Below the pieces are notes generated by a model that saw nothing but the letters and a program-made list of their open reading frames with translations, was not told the origin of the DNA and ran no database searches. Below, in pieces: positions 15,501 to 64,000 of a stretch of 64,000 nucleotides of DNA. The first letter of the stretch is position 1. Every line of letters starts with the position of its first letter. Made by a program: the position numbers and the translations under genes. This DNA is from Zygnema circumcarinatum SAG 698-1b (taxonomy: Eukaryota; Plantae; Zygnematophyceae): the NCBI GenBank assembly GCA_037447605.1, contig CM074805.1:1335361-1399360 (forward strand), in the 5' to 3' direction.

Positions 15501-18274
15501 TCTGTCCATACGTGTTGCAAACTATGCATTGGGTGCAGGTCATCCATCATTAGCGGGAGGCGCACCACCGGAGTAATGATTCGACGGGAAGGAGAGGATG
15601 CATGGAACCCCGAACTCTTCCGCGATGAGGGCAACGGAACGAACCCAAGAGACGCATCCCAAATCAAAACCTGCACACTTCCACCGGCGGTTTTCAATGA
15701 CAAAGAACAAGAGAAATCCAATGCAAAAAAAAGGTCTAAAATTCTAGAAATGCTATCAAAGTTTTGAATGTTTTGAAAGTTTTTGAACATGCAAACTCAC
15801 CAGCATTGCGAAAATGATGCCCAACACTCCAACTACAGCGCCCAAACTGAACCAGAGCCGCAAAAACCTGCACACCAATCGCCATACAACAATTCGCCGG
15901 TTTGTAAACTACAAATAAAAATTGAAGTTGAAAGAACCCCCTACCGGATCACATTAGGTCAAAGGGCTCATAAGGTTTATGTTTGCTAATGATGAACCCT
16001 AATCTTGTGCCGGAGTTGAAGTCAAAGAAGTGCACAGAAAATACGTAAGCAGTCCTAAAATACCGAGTGTGCAAAAGCATGGGAAGAAAAAATATGTACA
16101 TTTCCGAAAAAGTGCAGGGTTCAGGTTTAGGGCTTAGGGTCTAGGGGATTGCCACAACAATTGTAGGAATGTATCCAGGATTGTACCGCAGTGTATCACG
16201 TGTGGTAAGGGTACAATTGGAACGCAAAGGTACGGGTGAGCATGAGGGTGCCTTCCAAAGCTGCAGGCAGCTAACTTTCAGTTGGAGGATTACATCGTCG
16301 AAGAATTCTGCCCTGCCTTCGATCATTGCCTTCGGATGCACGCATGGGTAGATTTGGACCACATCATCATCGAGAACTTGGAAGATTCGGGACTGTGCAC
16401 GAAAAATGACGTGGGCGTGTTGGAGTATGCACAAATAGAAACTAATTGATAACGATCACGAATGTCTACGAACGTTCCTTGTCTCTCAACGTAGCATGGC
16501 CCTCGGTCGACATAGGGCCACCATGCCTATCCTTCAGAATGTGGCTCAAATGGGCGCCAATACCCTTTTGCAAACACACGCACCCTCAACTCCCCCATCT
16601 CTATCTGTGCATACTCCAACACACCTATGTCATTCTTCGTGCACACTCTCGGATTTTCAAGGTTCTTAATGATGATGTAATTTAAATCTACCCATGCGTG
16701 CGTCCGAAGGCAATGATAAAATGCAACATAAAACTCCTCGTCAATGCAATTCTCCAACTGAAAGTTGGCAGGCTGGAGGGCACCATCCTGCTCGGGTGAC
16801 CCACGGTCCTCACCCACACCTTTGCGTTCCAATTGTACCCTTATCACACGTGGTACACTGCGGTGCAATCCCTGGGTACTAACAATTCCCCTATGCACCA
16901 AAATGCTATCAGATTCTGTACTCTGAGTCTCTCCTCCGTCTCCTAAGGTTTAGGGTTCGGGGTTAGGGTTAAAGGTCTAGCAGTTCAGCAGTTAGGGTTT
17001 AGGGCTAGGCATAGGGTTGGGTTCAGGGTTTAAGAATTTAGGGTTTCTGGTTTAAGGTTAACAGTTTATGATTCAGGGCTCAAGTTCACAGTTAGGGTTT
17101 CAGGTTTAGGTCGAGGGTTGACAACTGGAGGTTCAGGGTTTAGGGTTTAGGGTTCAGGGTTTGAGGTTCAGAGTTCAGGGTTTAAGGTTCAGGGTTCAGG
17201 GTTTAAGGTTCAGGGTTCAGGTTTCAGGGTTTAGGGTTCAGGGTTTAAGGTTTAGGGTTCAGGGATTAGGGTTTAGGGTTTAGGGTTCAGGGTTTAAGGT
17301 TTCGGGTTCAGGGTTTAGGCTTAGGATTCAGTTGAGGATTTCAGGTTAACGGTTTGGGTTTAGGGGTTAGGGTCAGGGTTTAGGGTTGAGGGTCAGTTTT
17401 CAAGAATCAGTGTTTAGGGTTTGGAGGTTTCGGGTTTAACGTTTGGGGTTCAAAACTTTGAAGAGTTCGGGTTCACTGTTTACGGTTTAGGATCTGCGAT
17501 TATGGCTTCGGGTTTTCAGGGTTTAGGGTTAGGGTTAAGTGTGTAGGGTCAGGGTTAGGGTCTAGGCTTTCAAGCTTTAGTTTGTTAGAGTAGGGTTCAG
17601 AATTCAGGGTTTAAGGTTTGGGGTTTAAGGTTCAGGATTCAGAATTTTGGGCTTAGGGTAGGTCTTACGATTTAGGGTTTAAGGTTTACCCCTCTTCCCT
17701 CTACATTTTCCTCGGAACCCTAAAATCCGTTTCTCCATTTACTAGCAGGGAGGCCCTCCCCTCCCTCCGTCCCTCCCTCCCTCCCCCTCCTCCTCCCACC
17801 CCCCTCCTCTTCTGCCTCTCTCCCTCCCTCCCACTCCCCTCCTCCCCTCCCTCCCTCCCTCCCTCCCTCCCGCTCATCCTCCCACCCCCCTCCTCCCCTC
17901 CTTCCCTCCCTCCCTCCCTCCCGCTCCTCCTCCCACCCCGAATCTCCTCTGCCTCTCTCCCTCCCTCCCACTCGTCCTCCCACCCCCCTCCTCTTCTGCC
18001 TCTCTCCCTCACTCCCTCTCCTCCGCCCACCACCCTCCTCATCTGCCTCTCTCCCTCCCTCCCGCTCCTCCTCCGACCCCCCTCTTCCTCTCCCTCCCTC
18101 CCGCCTCCTCCCTGACCTGCCATGTCTGCGCCCCGCCGCGAAGAGCACGCCGTTCAGAGCGGTGGTCTCGGCCGCGAGGGTGCATCCCCCGCCCGCGCAT
18201 CCTCGCGCCCTCCTGGGAGGCGCCGCGGTCGGCCGAGACAGCTGGCGCAACCTCGAGCCGCCACGTGGACCCAT
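12599..18274 (-). CDS. S2P: Site-2 protease (peptidase M50, MBTPS2 type); exons 18274-18117, 15867-15801, 15670-15566, 14909-14806, 14692-14545, 14344-14264, 14180-13371, 13264-12950, 12766-12599
   Basis: ALNGVLFAAGRRHG/RFLRLWFSLG, PGVNLP, HEAGH (HExxH), SEG, LKIYCAGVWHN, PDZ-like SPLQGHVSPGDMLTSANG, and INMAP/VYFLDG with the third zinc ligand. All junctions are in frame. The start ATG is inferred. Confidence 0.93.
15020..15339. repeat. GA-rich simple repeat (GAGAGG/GGGA)n in S2P intron 3; a similar tract at 14210-14258
   Basis: Visible directly; reads CT-rich on the S2P sense strand. Confidence 0.95.
16149..16907. pseudogene. Two decayed copies of an unidentified coding fragment in inverted (tail-to-tail) orientation inside S2P intron 1
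   Basis: 16267-16440 (+) and 16772-16599 (-) encode 58-aa segments with 42 identities and many synonymous differences; nucleotide homology extends to ~16168 and ~16875. Confidence 0.8.
16944..17688 (+). repeat. Interstitial degenerate telomere-like array (TTTAGGG/TTCAGGG/TTTAAGG)
   Basis: About 745 bp of 7-mer variants, G-rich on +, most regular at ~17135-17320; a short 4-5 unit copy at ~16115-16148. Confidence 0.93.
17755..18116. repeat. CT-rich (CCCT/CCT)n tract at the 5' end of S2P intron 1
   Basis: Visible directly; reads as GGGA/GGA runs on the S2P pre-mRNA right after the donor. Confidence 0.95.
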
Positions 18275-48535: not shown

Positions 48536-49968
48536 TGACACTTTGGTTGTCATTCACACCGTTTCCTGAAGCATTGCGGAATAGTTTAGGCTTTGGCAGG
48601 AGATAGCTTGAATGGGAACCTGAAACTTGTACAGGACAGACGTGGTTCCCTCGTTTTCGAAAGTGTACTGTTCGGAAAGCGCACAGGAATGACTATGGAT
48701 CCATCTTTCCAGGTGGCAATTCACCTTTGGGAAACATGGAGAGGGAATACCGAGAGGAGAATTGGGAGTGAGACACAGAGAGAGAGAGAGGGCGAGAGAG
48801 AGAAAGAGAGGGAAAGAGAGAGAGGGAGGGAGAGAGATGTCCATCTTGGACGAGTAGTGCAGAAGTCATTTGCCAATTTTGCATTTTTTTTAGGATGGGC
48901 TAAGAACTAGCCGATTGCAAGCTGTACTATACGAGCCAGGTGCCTCCATTTGTTTCGCAAAATTCCACGGGTTCACTGTCTCCAAATAAGTGCAAAAAAA
49001 AAAGAGTTTGCACAAACTTCGCATTAAGGGCTTTCTCTGCGGCCTATTCGGTCATGAAAGCTCCAGATTGGCTTCTGGTTTCTGGCTTCTGGTTTATGCT
49101 CGCAGTACTTCACTATTGTATAGGGCCAATGCACTGTTAGGATGACGGATTTGAAGCTGGATATTTGGGGTTCGTTGTTAAAAGATATTTTTAGCCTTTA
49201 ATGACAAGAGGAAGACCTGAAAGCCAAGACGTCAGGATTACCATAGCGTGTACTGGTTTTATGAGTTTATTTGTTTTTTTTTTTTTTTTTTCATTTCGGT
49301 CCCCTTTCATATCAAGTTGCTGACCTTCCCCGGCGTACAGAAGGAACCCAACAAAAGGAACCCTGCCTCCCTTAGGTGGTTTTGTACTCGGCATCATGAC
49401 ACCCATGCATGTCGACCCAACGCACATCCCGAAAAAAGGCAGGGCATGGACGGGAACCATGCCATGGCCTAGCGTGGAAGCTCAGACACATATGTACGTG
49501 AACATGCGGTAACAATGGCTGCCCCTCTGCATCCAGATAAACGCTCCCAGGAGGACAAACTGTCCCAGTTTCCACAGATATGGAAGAGCTCCATGAGCGA
49601 GCCTTGATGATCAATGGACTCCGACAACACAATAGGAGGGCTGCCTGCTTGGAGCCATATGAAGGTGACAAAGCCGTTTGGCTCATGGTAGATAGTACAA
49701 CTGCTTCCTATTACATCCGCTCTACATCTGGAATAAAGCTGCGTCAATGAGAAAATGCTCACTCGCTACTCTTCTTCAACCACTACTCTACACGACTCTC
49801 TCCACAATCATCAAGATTGGAAAACCTCACGTGCACGCGATCTCATAACTTACCTCTCACGGTTCTTGACATGCTCGTTCCTTCCACCCTTATCCACTGA
49901 ACTCCACTCTTACGCCACTTCCATTCCGTTCAATTCAGAAACTCTTCAGTGCCTTTGGAAGGCTCTGC

Positions 49969-51877
49969 CTACAAGACCACCTTCACCTTCTTCTCGAGAA
50001 TTGGAGGGTCAATGTCAATACCCATATTTGCTGCTGTCCCCGCCACTATCCTCATAGCTGACTCAATTGTTGTGCAGTTAAGGTCTGGTAGCTTCTCCTG
50101 TGCAATTATTCGAATTTGGTCTGGTGTCAACTTGCCAACCTTGTCTTTCTGTGGATTGTTTGACCCCCTCTCAGCCCCTGCAAAGCGTCCATGCACAACA
50201 TGCCCCTCTTGAGTCACATGGCTCTATTTTAAAGTAAGAAATCGTCCCGTCAAGCAAAGAACCAGTTCAATTTAAAAATTTGTAATTCATCCTATTGTTT
50301 GCTTCCTGTCTGAGGAATCCATAACATTCAATGGTCCCAGCTTCGTCGAAAGCAAATCCTGAACACTCCCAGGATACAAAGCAAATGCTCTCATTGTCAA
50401 GGCCTCCCTCAGTTCCTGAACGAACAAAACAGATCGGAGATGGACTGACCACATGCTTTTAGAAGCAGAACGGATGCCGGAGGAGTCTTGAGGATAAAGG
50501 TAAAACTCTTGTCCTGCCACATGCCAACAAGGAGCCTAATTGAGCTTGTGAGTATAAGATTGATCCATGATCGTCCCCAGTCATAGTGGTGACGTCGAGG
50601 AAGCAGAATTGTCAGAAGTTGGAAGTGTTCCTAATAATTTAGAGTAAAGGCTTAATGATATTAGAGGCTGCGGCAACGTACATCATACACCGTGATCTCA
50701 ACAGGGATAACGTAACCCGGCTTATCAGCCGTCTTCGCGTTGTACTCCTTGCAGAACATCATAATATTGACTCCCTTAGCTCCTAGGGCAGGTCCAACAG
50801 GCGGCGCTGGAGTTGCCTTTCCCGCTTCTAACGCCAACTTGACTATGCCAACAACTGGACGCAATTTCCCACCAAATTCCCTTCCACAATATCAGCTGAT
50901 GCGTGCTGCACCACTTCTCCTTCAGCAGGGTCAAGGACATCACACAATGAAGCCATTATGCTCGAGCCATAACTAAGTCCGGAATCCTCAAACGAGAGGA
51001 AATTAAACGAGAGAAATCATGATGCGAATCGCAACACAATTGTAAAAGCTCATTTTTGATCTGCCACCATGCTAAAAGGTCCCTGCAAGCCTGCAAGGTC
51101 TTGACACATTGTAATCTGAACATTACTTGTACGACACTGTTTGAAGGCAATCCAAAAGACCCTGCCCAGCGGTCCAAACATGTGTCTCACGATAATCTGG
51201 ACTCAATCACATCAGTTTATTAAGTTCAGAATAGTTGGCCGCCCGGAAAGGGCATATTGACCTTTTAAAACTCTGACCCCAATGACGCTCTTTGAAGCAG
51301 AGTTTTCAAAACCTTACCCTTTTTCGCCTTTCCCGATGGCTTTGCGGCAGGTTTGGCAGCCACTGCCCACCCATCATCCCCCAGATGAGCTCACGAACTG
51401 ACATTCTACAAGAACAAAGTGAGACAAAAAACGCTCGCGAACGGAAGCAGAGGTCGTGCACGAAGCCAGTCCCCCAGTTTCCATTGAGAGAGAGCTAGAA
51501 CGTAAGGACGAGAGAGGGAGGGTGCAAGAGACAGGCCACTGACGCAATATACGGCAAGAACGACGCAATGCTGCAGTCCAGGATAGAGAATTGGGTGAAA
51601 TAGGTGACTCTCGGGGACTCCGTTAACAACACCCCCAAAATTGAGGCAAAACCAGAAATAGAGAAAGCTTCAGGTCGCATGCATAGTTGCAATGCTTACT
51701 GGAAACCCGGAATCTCGACAACCTTCCTGAATTGCCAGTTTCTGGCTGACAGAATTTCTGCCCAACCAAGCTTGAACTCCCGCTGCCAGCCAACTGGCTG
51801 GACGGCAGGAAGGCACTCGCCATGGCGCCGTCACGGACACCCAAATGAGCGGAGCAGTTCATCGCCGGAGCCGCCAT
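49969..51877 (-). CDS. RPL11: Plastid 50S ribosomal protein L11; exons 51877-51700, 51362-51318, ~50855-50681, ~50513-50452, ~50180-49969
   Basis: Transit peptide, then [95 protein letters not shown]. Confidence 0.96.
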
Positions 51878-52394
51878 GGCCTGCACACCCCTGCTACAAG
51901 CTTCTCCTGCTTCCCCCTTCCTGCGAACAAATTTAGGGTTAGAGAGAAGGCAGAGCGCTGCCAGGAGGCAGGCTATGGGGTTTAGGGAGGCGAGGTTCGC
52001 TACGTGGCAGGCCCCCCGCGAAGGGCGCTCGGGGGAAGTCAGAGGCGGCCGGATCCACCGTCCATGAAAAAAGCGATAAATGATATCAGCCGTCGAGTTT
52101 ATTCAATCGACGGCCATAGTGAGAAGGAGGCTTTTGGATAAGGAGTGAATTTGAGCTGTTCAAGTTTTGCCGGGGTTGAGATGGGCAGGTCCAACGTGTA
52201 GGATGGGTCCACCACTGCTGTTCCACTGAGTTGATCTCGTGGATCTGGCGATCTACTTGCTCCTTGAACCCCCTTCCAAGGGCGGGTCTCTCTGTCGTCC
52301 TCCCTGGTCCTCAGGCGCTGTCTCCCCTCCGAAGTTTGGAAGCTGGGGAAGGTGCTGGAACCCTAATTGTTTGCTGCTGCAACAGGCATCCGCC
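51878..52394. promoter_or_regulatory. Bidirectional RPL11/ClpR1 promoter with mirrored telo-boxes and a central hairpin
   Basis: AACCCTAA at 51933-51940 (-) and 52359-52366 (+); GCCGTCGA-N10-TCGACGGC at 52089-52114. Confidence 0.7.
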
Positions 52395-55300
52395 ATGGCG
52401 GCTCCTTCACTTCACTGCTTCAACGCTGGCCAGGCCGTGCAAGGAGGCGCCATGGCCAGTGGGTTTCTTCCATGCAGCCAGCTGTCGGGCAGCCAGAGTT
52501 CGAGCCTGGCTGGGCAAAAGCTCGTGATTCCTCTTGCAGGAAAGTTGGGAAGCTCGAGAAAATGGCGTATTGCAGCTGCTTCTGCGTCCCTGGACCGCAT
52601 TCCGAAGCAATTCCGGACCGAAAATTTAACGGAAGGAGGTACGTTTGTGAATCTACAGATGCGATAGGAGCACTCTCCATTGGCCTTTTGACTTCGTTGA
52701 TGTTTGGGCGATTCTTAAAACGTTTCATATCTAGTGAAAGTCATGTAGCATCAGCTTCTTTTCGTGTAGCAGCAGAAATGCTCACGAGTCACGACTTGTC
52801 GTCACTTGAAGGCGTTGCTTTCCATTTCTTCTTTTGTAGTTATTCTTTGTGAGGTAATTTCAAGTCCTGGTCATTCGTTTGGACACTAAAAGATTCGTCT
52901 GAAAAGTTGATTCACGCAGTGCGCTCTTTTTTCCGTTAGAAATTTATGGAATCTTCGACAAATACCTGTCTGGGAAGTCATCTAAAATTAGGAATCTAAG
53001 CTGCCCGTCAATTCACGCTTTCTACCTAGGGTTGGCAAATGTTGCGTCAGTCGGTGGATTAGAATGCTGTGGCCAGAGCAACTTCCGCAACTTTAAGAAA
53101 GCTTCTGATGAGTCTTTGATGCAAGAAGATTTCCTTCCGGGTTTTTTTGTTCTCTTATTGTATCCAAAATATGAACGTTTGCACTCACTTTTTGGAAGCC
53201 TGAAGGTTCAGCAGAGGGCATGATGAAGTGAATGGTTCACAGACAGCACCTTACTATTACTGATGCACACAGGCACCTTACTAGTGGTTTGCAGGTAGTA
53301 AATAGTGGCTTCCGCATTTAGTTGAGTTCAGTCAGTGGCCTTCAGTTTCCTTGGATCTGTTCGGTAGCATATTCTTTACGTTTATGTTAACGCTTGGTTC
53401 TTCTTTTTGCTCGTTACTTTCTTGTTTTATCGCAATCTGGAAAAGTTGCATATTCTATGTAAAAGGTTTTGCCTGAAGAATGCAAAGCTCATATTCGTAG
53501 ACCAATGTGCGGATGATGGGTGGGCAGTGGCTGAAAATTTTAGGAGTGTGCCACAGTCGCTCTATGGGCTGACACCAAGACAATTGGACATGTTTATGGC
53601 CGGGGAAAATTCTGTACTTCGCAAAGGAGAGAGAACCTCTGAAGTAAGCTCATTTTTTTTTCTTTCTTTCTTCGCGTTCTATTTTCTGTTTGAGATTTTG
53701 AAGTGTTTTTTCGATTTTGGTTTTGTGCCAGTTGTCAGTGTTGCAAGTTTTTGCTTGACATTGATGTATGAAGCAATGTAGGAGTATCTACGTTCCTAAT
53801 TCTGTGTAGTTGTGCAATTGCGTTAATGTAGAAATGATGTTGTTGACGGAAAGCGAAAAAGTATGCTGTCGACAGCATCAGTTGTAGATGCATCTTTCCC
53901 TTTCTCCATTTCTTCCCTTCTACATTCCAACCCCCTTCTCCCATTCATGTCTCTTCTCAACCTGAACTCCTGCTGCTTTGTTGGAACAGGCAAGCATTAC
54001 ATCTGCAAAGTGTTACAGGGAGCACACTGGAATGTGGAGCATGGACGGAGTGGATAACGGGCCATCACGCATAAGCATGAGTGTCAGCATGTATAGAGGA
54101 GGCGGTTTCATGGGCAGGCCCAAGCAAGCACCCCCGGACTTGCCCTCGTTGCTTTTGGATGCACGAATCTGCTATCTTGGCATGCCGGTGAGTGACCCTG
54201 AATAGCTGAGTTTGGATGGTGTGAAACTACAGAAATTGCATCATCCATGTCTGCACTGCCTGATTAGGCTCGCATTTGCTTTTGCACGGCAGCAATCGTG
54301 GCACAGGCACTTTTATATGCATTTCCAGTAGGGTGCATTGGCCAGTTATATAGCCATCAGCTAATTGAGCTGCGCCAGAACTATCAGTAGTCTATTTCCC
54401 CACGTTTCCTTATGTTGCGGTTTCATCCTGTTACCTGTGGGATATAGAGATTATTTAAGAAAAAGGTGTATTTCAATTAACATGCGAATAGTTGCAACCG
54501 ACATGATGGCAGCAGCATGAAAGTCAGTTGTCTCTGCAAGAACAACACACAAGGAATGGCCAATGGCTGTATTGGACTACGCAGTAAGAATGCAGTGCTA
54601 TTGTAGATAGGCATCACTTCTCCTGCTCGACTTTATGACGCGCCCTCATTTGTCGGAATTTTGATCCGACAGAGTCGCACTTCGTCTGTGCTTGCAATGC
54701 CCACTTTGCAGTTGCTTCTTGCCCACGTCCACCTGATGCACTTCCGTTTGTGTTTGGGTCCTTCCTCAGATAGTGCCAGCGGTCACAGAGCTTGTGGTGG
54801 CGGAGCTGCTCTGGTTGGATTTTGATGACTCCTCAAAACCCATCTACCTTTACATTAATTCCCCCGGAACACAGGTGAGTTAACAAATCAAGGGCCTCCT
54901 CGGTTTTCTTGGAGTATTACAGTAGGTTATGGCTACAGCAAAAAGCTAGATAATCTTTTCCGGTGAAATATACGGCGCACTGCTACATAAAGGAGATCTC
55001 TTTGTTTATGTCAATATTTGCCATGGCTGAGAAAGCCATATAAAACTTTTCGTTGTGCAGACAACATTTAATGTAACTTACCATCAGCTTTTTTTGTGTT
55101 CGTTGTCAACTCCTTGTATCCACAGAACCAGAAACGGGAGAGTATTGGCTTTGAGACAGAGGCGTATGCTATTGCAGACACCATGAACGTGAGTGAAATC
55201 ACCGCTTTAAAAAAGGAGGGACGGGGTGATGTCAGTCACAGTGCAGTAGTTCAATTTGAAGTCTATAAACTGCACGATTTTCTCTTCATTTCTACAACAC

Positions 55301-56577
55301 TTCCGTCGTGAATGTCATCAAACGCTCAATGTCAGCGTCGTTTTGTTCTATCTGGCATGGGTTTGTTGGCAGAACGCTTTCGCTTCCTTTGCTGCCAAAG
55401 TTTTACGCTGCAATAAGAGATGTTCAGGTGTTCCATTCGTTTAGGAGACAATGGTGATGTTGTCCTGTTGGTATATGCAGTATGTCAAAGCCAAGGTCTA
55501 CACTATCAACTGCGGTCAAGCACTTGGACAAGCAGCCATGCTTTTGGGCATTGGGGACAAAGGCCATCGTGCGGTGCAGCCTAATGCCGTCAGTGAGTGC
55601 TATGACTTGCTCCCCATCCTGGATCAGGAAACCGAGTTTTTCATTCGTTCTATTCCTTATTCCTTTTCATTATGGAGTTAATTTCCGTATGAAAGAGACG
55701 TGATGGGCATATTGCGATCTTAAGCTCTTCTTAGTTGTAGAGCTAAGTTAGCAGCTTGTTTTTCACAATGATGTGGCCCAAGCTGCAAGGAACGTGAGAT
55801 GTTGGAAGCATTCTGTTTAGATGAAGTCATGGGTTAGGGCAAAATGTCGGAGGCTGTTGAATTTCAGTCGAATGGTTTGTTGAAAGATGAAGGGAATAAG
55901 AAAGTGTACTCGTTGGCTATGCTGCAGCCAAGATCTATGCTCCCAAAGTGAACCAATCAGGAGGATCTGCAACTGATATGTGGATCAAGGTGAGGGGCTG
56001 GAGATGCTGCAATGATTGCATTGCTTAAGTACTGGGTTTTATGCTTTTGGTTTGTAAGCAAATTTTAGCGGAAAGCGAATACAGGTGTTTAGATGCATAG
56101 GAATCTACTGATTGCCTCTCTGGGCTGGTCTTGAGCTGTGCAGGCCAAGGAGCTGGATGCCAACACGGATTACTATGTCGAATTGCTAGCAAAGGGTACT
56201 GGAAAGAGCGTGGAGGAGATTTCCAAAGATATCCAGAGGCCGATGTACTTCCGTGGGCAGGAGTGCATCGACTATGGTCTGGCTGACAAGATCATTGAAA
56301 GCAGAGGAGTAGCCATGGAGAAGAAGGTGAGATACTCTATTGTATTTGACAGCTGAGATGCCTGAAATTAGGGCTATATATATATCTTTTGGGTTATGGC
56401 GTAATGTTAAGTGAAGCCTTGGCTGATGGAGAGATTGACTAACTTTGTTTCTGATTTGTGGCCTCCGTGATGGGACAGAATTACGATGAACTGCTTGCTC
56501 AGTCGAAGGCTGTCCGAACCCAATCTTCACGACCTTCCGCAGCCTCTGCAGGAGCAGGGGCAGGCGCAGGGCGCTGA
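52395..56577 (+). CDS. CLPR1: Plastid Clp protease non-catalytic subunit ClpR1; 9 exons, the first 52395-52638 and the second 53528-53643
   Basis: SLDRIPKQFRTENL..G/VAENFRSVPQSLYGL..QLDMFM, SMSVSMYRGGG..RPKQAPPDLPSLLLDARICYLGMP/IVPAVTEL, ETEAYAIADT, DMWIK/AKELDANTDYY, matching the recalled ClpR1 sequence pattern. Confidence 0.96.
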
Positions 56578-63391: not shown

Positions 63392-64000
63392 ATGGCGACA
63401 AGGTCGCTGCAAGCAGCTGAAAGGATTTCTTCAACCGGTGCGGAGGTTTCTTCTCATATAAGGTCGGGGTACGATCAGAGGGCTGTGTTGCAGGGGGAGA
63501 AGAGTCAGAGCAGGCGGAAGGGAGTCGTTTATTCTGCTGCTCACAGGGTGGAGACTCGGAGAGCTTCTGGAAGAGTTCTTCAGGACGCAACGTTATGGTG
63601 CGGAGAGAAAGCATCTCTCAGAAATATAGGGTTGCTCTCAAGAGGGAGGAGACACATTGCGCTTTCCCCAGCTTGTTCGAAGATGTTTGTTCCTGGTACG
63701 ACAGAGCTTTGAAAGGCGTCTTTTGATGGAATTCGGTATAACTCAACAGGATTATCGAGTAATCCAGCTAAATTATTTTATCGACTGCTGCTTATTTGCT
63801 TTGCCTGCCGTTTTTCTGCCGTTGTTTTTCTATCCATGACTGAATTTCACGTTGTTGGTGTCAGGTTTTGGAGAGAAATCCCCGGAGGCGAAAGCAGCCG
63901 ATTCTCTCCATAATTTCTTCACCTATCTTGCTGTCAAGATCGTCCTGGCTCAATTGCAGGTGCCATTCTCTGTCCCTCTCTCAAAACGAGGTCGCCGCCT
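63392..64000 (+). CDS. RBCX1: Rubisco assembly chaperone RbcX (RbcX1 type), 3'-partial; exons 63392-63695 and 63865-63959
   Basis: Transit peptide, then ACSKMFVPG/FGEKSPEAKAADSLHNFFTYLAVKIVLAQLQ, the RbcX1 N-terminal signature. Confidence 0.92.

Follow-up and report, generated by a model that had tools for sequence, protein, structure and literature searches.

A 64,000-nucleotide (nt) stretch of the Zygnema circumcarinatum SAG 698-1b genome (GenBank assembly GCA_037447605.1, contig CM074805.1, positions 1,335,361 to 1,399,360 of the forward strand; hereafter the window, numbered from its first letter) carries two divergently transcribed genes, one on the minus strand for a ribosomal protein of the L11 type (RPL11) and one on the plus strand for a Clp core subunit (ClpR). 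Their start codons lie at 51877 and 52395, 518 bp apart on opposite strands, as an earlier note made from the letters of the window had read them from the sequence and its open reading frames (ORFs). The mature parts of the two proteins are unrelated (L11 domains vs. the Clp protease fold), and each is preceded by a presequence that can be aligned with that of the other. The first exons of RPL11 and ClpR are homologous, not just alike in composition.

Gene models and transcripts of the divergent pair

The RNA evidence consists of spliced contigs assembled from four public runs (X1, X2, X3, and X6) of one organism. The minus-strand ORF from 51877 ends at a GTAAGC donor (51699), and the plus-strand ORF from 52395 at a GTACGT donor (52639). 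The corresponding spliced joints, 51700/51362 in RPL11 and 52638/53528 in ClpR, are present in the four runs, and the same RNA contigs supply most of the remaining introns of both genes. Both first exons (178 and 244 nt) end in phase 1, as the earlier note had stated. Because the joint 51700/51362 is found in RNA, RPL11 does use the exon at 51877-51700, and the objection that the earlier note had raised against itself, that transcripts might bypass this exon, fails. The features of the two genes are as follows:

51700..51877, minus strand: RPL11 exon 1 (178 nt, phase 1), holding the whole 59-residue presequence; from the ORF and the RNA joint
51363..51699, minus strand: RPL11 intron 1 (337 nt, GT..AG), the last 17 nt being the only part that aligns with ClpR intron 1
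51318-51362, 50682-50854, 50450-50513, and 49969-50177, minus strand: remaining RPL11 exons, from RNA joints
52395..52638, plus strand: ClpR exon 1 (244 nt, phase 1), encoding a presequence of ~60 residues and ~21 more residues
52639-53527, plus strand: ClpR intron 1 (889 nt); exon 2 begins at 53528
53528-53643, 53990-54187, 54770-54874, and 55126-55188, plus strand: ClpR exons 2-5
55481-55592, 55928-55989, 56144-56326, and 56479-56577, plus strand: ClpR exons 6-9, with the gene end at 56577

The RPL11 model translates to 222 amino acids (aa) and matches two Pfam families, Ribosomal_L11_N (PF03946, 90.8 bits) and Ribosomal_L11 (PF00298, 70 bits). Its closest relative among solved structures is spinach chloroplast L11 (E 6.5e-31), which ranks above bacterial and mitochondrial chains. 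The L11 N-terminal domain, which begins ~75 residues into the protein, corresponds in alignment to residues 74-135 of that spinach chain. By these matches, the minus-strand gene is identified as a nuclear gene for the plastid ribosomal protein uL11c.

The ClpR model is ORF-consistent, with GT..AG introns, and translates to 393 aa; RNA joints give six of its exons, a loose end placed at 55928 marks the seventh, and the final two introns are predicted. The Pfam family CLP_protease (PF00574) matches three of the exons, the Clp domain beginning far downstream of exon 1, and the matches among solved structures are ClpP chains, those of 7eko among them. The catalytic serine is replaced by glycine (GQALG, aligned with GQAAS of an active ClpP2), which makes the product a ClpR-type subunit; the loss of the catalytic His and Asp is a reading by eye of the gene model only. 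From its predicted protein, the plus-strand gene is thus assigned to a catalytically inactive Clp core subunit of the ClpR type. By its N-terminal region, this subunit is a candidate ClpR1 (vs. ClpR2-4), the name used in the earlier note.

Both genes are covered by RNA contigs in 4/4 runs, the ClpR contigs starting at 52328 and 52344. With gene starts less than 1 kb apart and both genes expressed, the locus is a divergent gene pair. Across 49900-55800, the RPL11:ClpR ratio of contig depth, a poor measure of expression, is ~3.6 in X1, ~0.26 in X2 and X3, and ~0.44 in X6; as far as so poor a measure can be read, this more than tenfold spread among the runs argues against strict co-expression. 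One 939-nt RNA contig at 51700-52638 (X2 and X3) links the RPL11 exon-1 donor to the ClpR exon-1 donor, and the middle of the intergenic region is nearly without RNA coverage in X1 and X6. This contig is probably no single transcript but the product of low-level read-through, or of DNA background, between two exons with high coverage. In X1 only, the summed contig depth over the 3' end of RPL11 (49900-50096) reaches ~24,600, at least five times that of the other RPL11 exons; it is made up of 287 contigs, many of them only 90-99% alike, and there is no such excess in the other three runs. An abundant transcript may have given rise to them as error variants, or a related strain may have been present in that run.

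Shared presequences of RPL11 and ClpR

The alignment of the exon-1 peptides takes in the full RPL11 presequence of 59 residues and needs one gap. The earlier note had counted 26 identical residues of 42 and one gap; the gap stands, and the count becomes 27/42 in a MAFFT alignment. The best conserved part is a core of 25 codons:

51755..51829, minus strand: presequence core, RPL11 copy (25 codons)
52446..52520, plus strand: presequence core, ClpR copy (25 codons)

Twenty of the 25 core residues are identical, and nine of these 20 are specified by different codons, both counts being exactly those reported earlier. The BLOSUM62 local score of the two peptides is 138, compared with 28.0 +/- 5.4 for shuffled peptides (maximum 62, z = 20); none of 20,000 composition-preserving shuffles reached the observed score. 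Of the 27 identical residues, 16 have the same codon, where codon usage in the mature regions of both genes predicts 9.4 (P = 0.004), so the DNA retains a trace of common descent beyond the similarity of the proteins. At the DNA level, three inverted and collinear blocks are found: 14/14 nt around the start codons (51867-51880 with 52392-52405), 74 nt at 78% identity in the core (51756-51829 with 52446-52519), and 23/23 nt at the intron-1 acceptors (51357-51379 with 53511-53533; blastn). In both genes, the presequence lies on a 5' exon that ends in the same intron phase.

By the Nei-Gojobori method, the proportion of synonymous differences (pS) is 0.63 and the synonymous divergence (dS) about 1.36 (in summary, about 1.4), which is nearly saturated. 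The ratio of non-synonymous to synonymous divergence (dN/dS) falls from 0.34 in the first 17 codons to 0.08 in the 25-codon core, the value for all 42 codons being 0.17. When the 17 core substitutions were placed randomly in a neutral simulation, at least 20 of the 25 residues were kept in only 2 of 10,000 trials (P = 2e-4). The proposal of the earlier note that selection has kept the peptide at the protein level is thus supported by both measures. No likeness beyond that of dinucleotide shuffles was found between the leaders, between either ends of intron 1, in the remainder of exon 1, or in exon 2, and the first introns differ in length (337 nt in RPL11 vs. 889 nt in ClpR). The picture is that of an apparently old duplication, in which neutral positions are saturated and part of the peptide is constrained.

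The composition of the presequences is that of transit peptides. Ser+Thr account for 10-12 of the 59-60 positions, Ala for 8-9, and Gly for 7-8; 5 residues are basic and 0-2 acidic. Each presequence starts with MAAP, so that they are rich in Ser, Thr, and Ala, poor in acidic residues, net positive, and begin with Met-Ala. Both are N-terminal extensions that are absent from bacterial homologues and lie ahead of the conserved mature domain, as expected of transit peptides. Downstream of the core, a weaker alignment reaches a basic and aliphatic stretch, R-F-R-V-S in RPL11 and K-W-R-I-A in ClpR; the former coincides with the end of RPL11 exon 1, and ClpR has ~21 more residues before its intron. 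These stretches resemble a stromal processing site, with putative cleavage near R-V-S and R-I-A. We infer that a whole transit peptide, not a mere motif, is common to both genes, and that it is probably an ordinary stromal one.

Both presequences contain a second in-frame Met, at codon 19 in RPL11 and codon 20 in ClpR (51819-51829, minus strand, and 52446-52456, plus strand). Its 11-nt context, GGCGCCATGGC, is identical in the two genes and echoes GCCATGGC around the first ATG. It is exactly at this Met that the strongly conserved core starts, and codons 5-17 are far less conserved. The second Met could conceivably serve as an alternative start.

The intron-1 acceptor block and the intergenic region

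The third DNA block spans the acceptors of the first introns:

51357..51379, minus strand: 23-nt block, RPL11 copy (GGATGATGGGTGGGCAG then TGGCTG), spanning the intron-1 acceptor
53511..53533, plus strand: 23-nt block, ClpR copy, spanning the intron-1 acceptor

The block comprises the last 17 nt of intron 1 and the first 6 nt of exon 2 and is identical in both genes; according to the RNA contigs, the splice site lies at the same position within it in both. Its last 6 nt encode Met-Ala and Val-Ala. Searched with up to 3 mismatches, the 17-mer has no match in the window beyond these two. Folding around the acceptors gave no shared RNA structure, and a scan of 51000-54000 against the Rfam database gave no family. 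Because the silent sites of the exons are saturated and the rest of the introns cannot be aligned, the block does not represent simple inheritance at the neutral rate. Either there is strong constraint at the nucleotide level on a purine-rich acceptor, or the block is a recent, short, templated copy.

The region between the start codons holds the following features:

51878..52394, no strand: divergent intergenic, leader, and promoter region, from the sequence; the intergenic part is ~0.4 kb
51933-51940, minus strand, and 52359-52366, plus strand: telo-box cores, from a telo-box scan

Each leader carries a telo-box core in the sense orientation, ~55 and ~28 nt ahead of the respective ATG. The core, AACCCTAA, occurs in 32 copies within 9764-62354 of the window vs. 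1.9 expected; ~19 of these lie in an interstitial telomere-like array at 16950-17723. The ~13 isolated copies also exceed the chance expectation of 1.9, and several are apparently close to gene starts. Because the telo-box is common in the window, its presence in both leaders is no evidence of leader homology, and the joint resemblance of telo-box plus TTGTT between the leaders is not significant. Over the 150 nt upstream of the ATGs, the two sides are no more alike than shuffled sequences. The earlier note had one gene receiving the promoter of the other together with the presequence; this part of its proposal is not borne out, as the only upstream feature in common is the widespread telo-box core.

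Near the middle of the intergenic region, at 52205-52212, lies GGGTCCAC, a putative class II TCP-factor site, its opposite strand matching GTGGNCCC.

Origin of the shared presequence and related systems

On balance, we favour an old, local, inverted duplication in which a 5' end from one of the two genes was captured by the unrelated neighbour as its presequence, and regard this history as somewhat probable. The 5' end of one gene would have been duplicated locally in inverted orientation, and the copy captured in frame by the neighbouring gene, replacing any earlier presequence. After the capture, silent sites, leaders, and introns would have diverged to saturation, and the 25-residue core and the N-terminal MAAP would have been kept under purifying selection. 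The local inverted duplication advanced in the earlier note fits the homologous, collinear, inverted blocks in adjacent genes; the copied promoter that had been joined to it lacks support in the sequence.

Several points weigh against this history. It is drawn from one genome only. Plastid import and the cleavage site are predictions. The 23/23 identity at the acceptor clashes with the saturated silent sites, and ~21 ClpR codons and nearly the whole intron, none of which can be aligned, separate the shared presequence from the shared acceptor, so that a single contiguous duplication is not an easy explanation. The organism itself evidently lies outside the protein collections, because the searches described below missed even the two proteins of the window, and a wider family of such presequences within the same genome is therefore possible.

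Such a family would be the first alternative: a lineage-specific set of presequence exons, spread by exon shuffling or by a mobile sequence, with the adjacency of RPL11 and ClpR incidental or one instance of a recurrent process. We consider this unlikely, although the RPL11 presequence fills a phase-1 exon of its own, which would be easy to shuffle, and the protein collections are without the organism's own proteins. A profile built from the two peptides, run over the window in all six frames, found no third copy, RbcX included (93-96 bits for the pair vs. 8.9 for the runner-up). A HMMER profile of the presequence found no third member among 1.84 billion protein representatives; the one match, of low complexity and in six short stretches, was rejected as unrelated. 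Neither the two presequences nor ClpR exon 2 has a relative among the sequences of solved structures, a set that includes a precursor-length chain (224 aa) of L11 from spinach chloroplasts; one match there was a His-tag artefact and was discarded. Metagenome contigs gave zero matches when scanned with a back-translated pattern of the core and with the 23-mer. In the four transcriptome assemblies, no other contig is at least 80% alike to the stretch, a threshold to be read against the 78% by which the two arms themselves are alike at the DNA level. The inverted, collinear, and adjacent layout, acceptor block included, is moreover what a local event predicts.

Two homologue searches with stop-free stretches of the two genes bear on the content of the protein collection. 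For a 142-aa ClpR stretch (region 53-112), there were 6 word candidates, none of which scored; this search was weak by design, because ClpR at full length falls outside its length window of 78-248 aa and only one 5-residue word of the query occurs in RPL11. For a 159-aa RPL11 stretch (region 76-134), there was no candidate. The latter result suggests that the collection contains neither the source organism nor any close relative of it.

The RbcX-like gene on the plus strand, whose transit peptide the earlier note had rightly described as lacking the motif, has a first exon at or near 63392-63712 that was covered by the six-frame search. This exon ends in ...KMFVPG, and the next, at ~63880-63960, has GFGEKSPEAKAA...FFTYLAVKIVLAQLQ; the gene extends past the end of the window, and its N-terminus is unlike the shared presequence.

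A second alternative, in our judgement distinctly improbable, is that the similarity has been partly kept or renewed by exchange between the inverted arms, through short-tract conversion or templated repair, the 23-nt block being a recent patch. The block is identical, yet exon 1 is close to saturation at its silent sites, and the intron next to the block is no more alike than shuffled sequence; it has the size of a short templated insertion with an inverted copy within 2.2 kb, and its last 6 nt, which code for residues that each protein needs, could serve as microhomology. Conversion, however, normally needs flanking homology, of which the acceptor has none, and functional constraint on the acceptor would account for the identity equally well. 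In the exon core, long identical tracts do not exceed those expected at 78% identity, and there is hence no sign of ongoing conversion there.

We give a still lower probability to the view that the 25-residue core and the 23-nt acceptor form a selected, shared control module that couples the supply of a plastid ribosomal protein to the Clp core. Such a module might take the form of a specific import or quality-control determinant together with a common splicing checkpoint, the two elements then not being leftovers of a duplication; in this form, too, it seems very doubtful. The dedicated shared signal for ribosome and Clp protease to which the earlier note pointed is unlikely. Convergent or compositional resemblance without common descent is effectively refuted: transit peptides do have Ser/Ala-rich composition and loose motifs in common, and silent sites carry little signal (pS 0.63), but the alignment score lies 20 standard deviations above the shuffles (0/20,000 reaching it), shared codons are in excess (P = 0.004), and identical 14-nt and 23-nt blocks occur in collinear inverted order.

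It is established that targeting peptides can be taken over from existing genes through duplication or exon shuffling. In the account of nuclear rpl32 given in PMC4329224 (summarising Ueda et al. 2007; Cusack and Wolfe 2007), the gene of Populus and Bruguiera is fused to the Cu-Zn superoxide dismutase gene for its transit peptide. As in the present locus, the genes of a plastid ribosomal protein and of a plastid protein unrelated to it draw on one transit peptide that already existed, gained by way of a genomic rearrangement and not made anew. In rpl32, the recipient was newly transferred from the plastid and had no presequence, and the products were at first encoded at one locus. RPL11 and ClpR, unlike rpl32, are both long-standing nuclear genes, and the copies are separate, inverted, and divergently transcribed. 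Because both partners are old nuclear genes, a presequence would here have been replaced, not newly supplied.

Exon shuffling gave cytochrome c1 its targeting sequence, in the account of PMC7456531 (Long et al. 1996, PMC38815). As in such cases of exon shuffling, the targeting peptide of RPL11 and ClpR lies on a 5' exon whose intron phase is compatible, ahead of unrelated mature parts; unlike them, the two genes are immediate neighbours, the copy is inverted, and there is an identical 23-nt acceptor block. Among the routes by which new transit peptides are gained, indels and alternative starts dominate, and shuffling is a minority route (PMC7456531). Further plastid genes transferred to the nucleus have acquired targeting peptides from existing genes (PMC7488351, PMC8018952).

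The rice and head-to-head comparisons touch other sides of the locus. At5g06290/At5g06280 is a head-to-head plant pair with a short shared intergenic region (PMC2772851). Like that pair, RPL11 and ClpR are divergent, lie less than 1 kb apart, and encode at least one chloroplast protein; the known head-to-head pairs share regulatory DNA only, whereas here the first coding exons are homologous. For rice mitochondria, Kubo and colleagues (1999) and Kadowaki and colleagues (1996) are said to have described shared presequences, that of rps14 with sdhB and that of rps11 with atp2/coxVb. As in the locus studied here, unrelated organellar proteins would have come to the same presequence by duplication or joint use of a 5' exon. 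The rice cases are reportedly mitochondrial, followed a recent transfer from organelle to nucleus, and in one instance work by alternative splicing of a single transcript in place of two copies.

The RPL11/ClpR pair thus belongs to a known phenomenon, the gain of a targeting peptide by duplication or exon shuffling, and is distinct in its old nuclear partners, its adjacent inverted copies, its unusually well conserved core, and its unexplained acceptor block. The usual view of transit peptides is that they evolve fast and are defined by their composition, and the documented takeovers of presequences mostly concern genes freshly transferred from an organelle. In RPL11 and ClpR, both copies are still at the site of the event, with a constrained core (dN/dS about 0.1) amid saturated silent sites, and the pair amounts to a natural experiment that can tell which of a transit peptide's residues matter. 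With two genes, a short intergenic region, and an odd conserved acceptor, the locus also offers a compact test bed for the replacement of targeting signals and for possible coupling between divergent genes of plastid biogenesis. Should more captures of this kind exist in the genome, retargeting by local inverted duplication may have recurred in this lineage.

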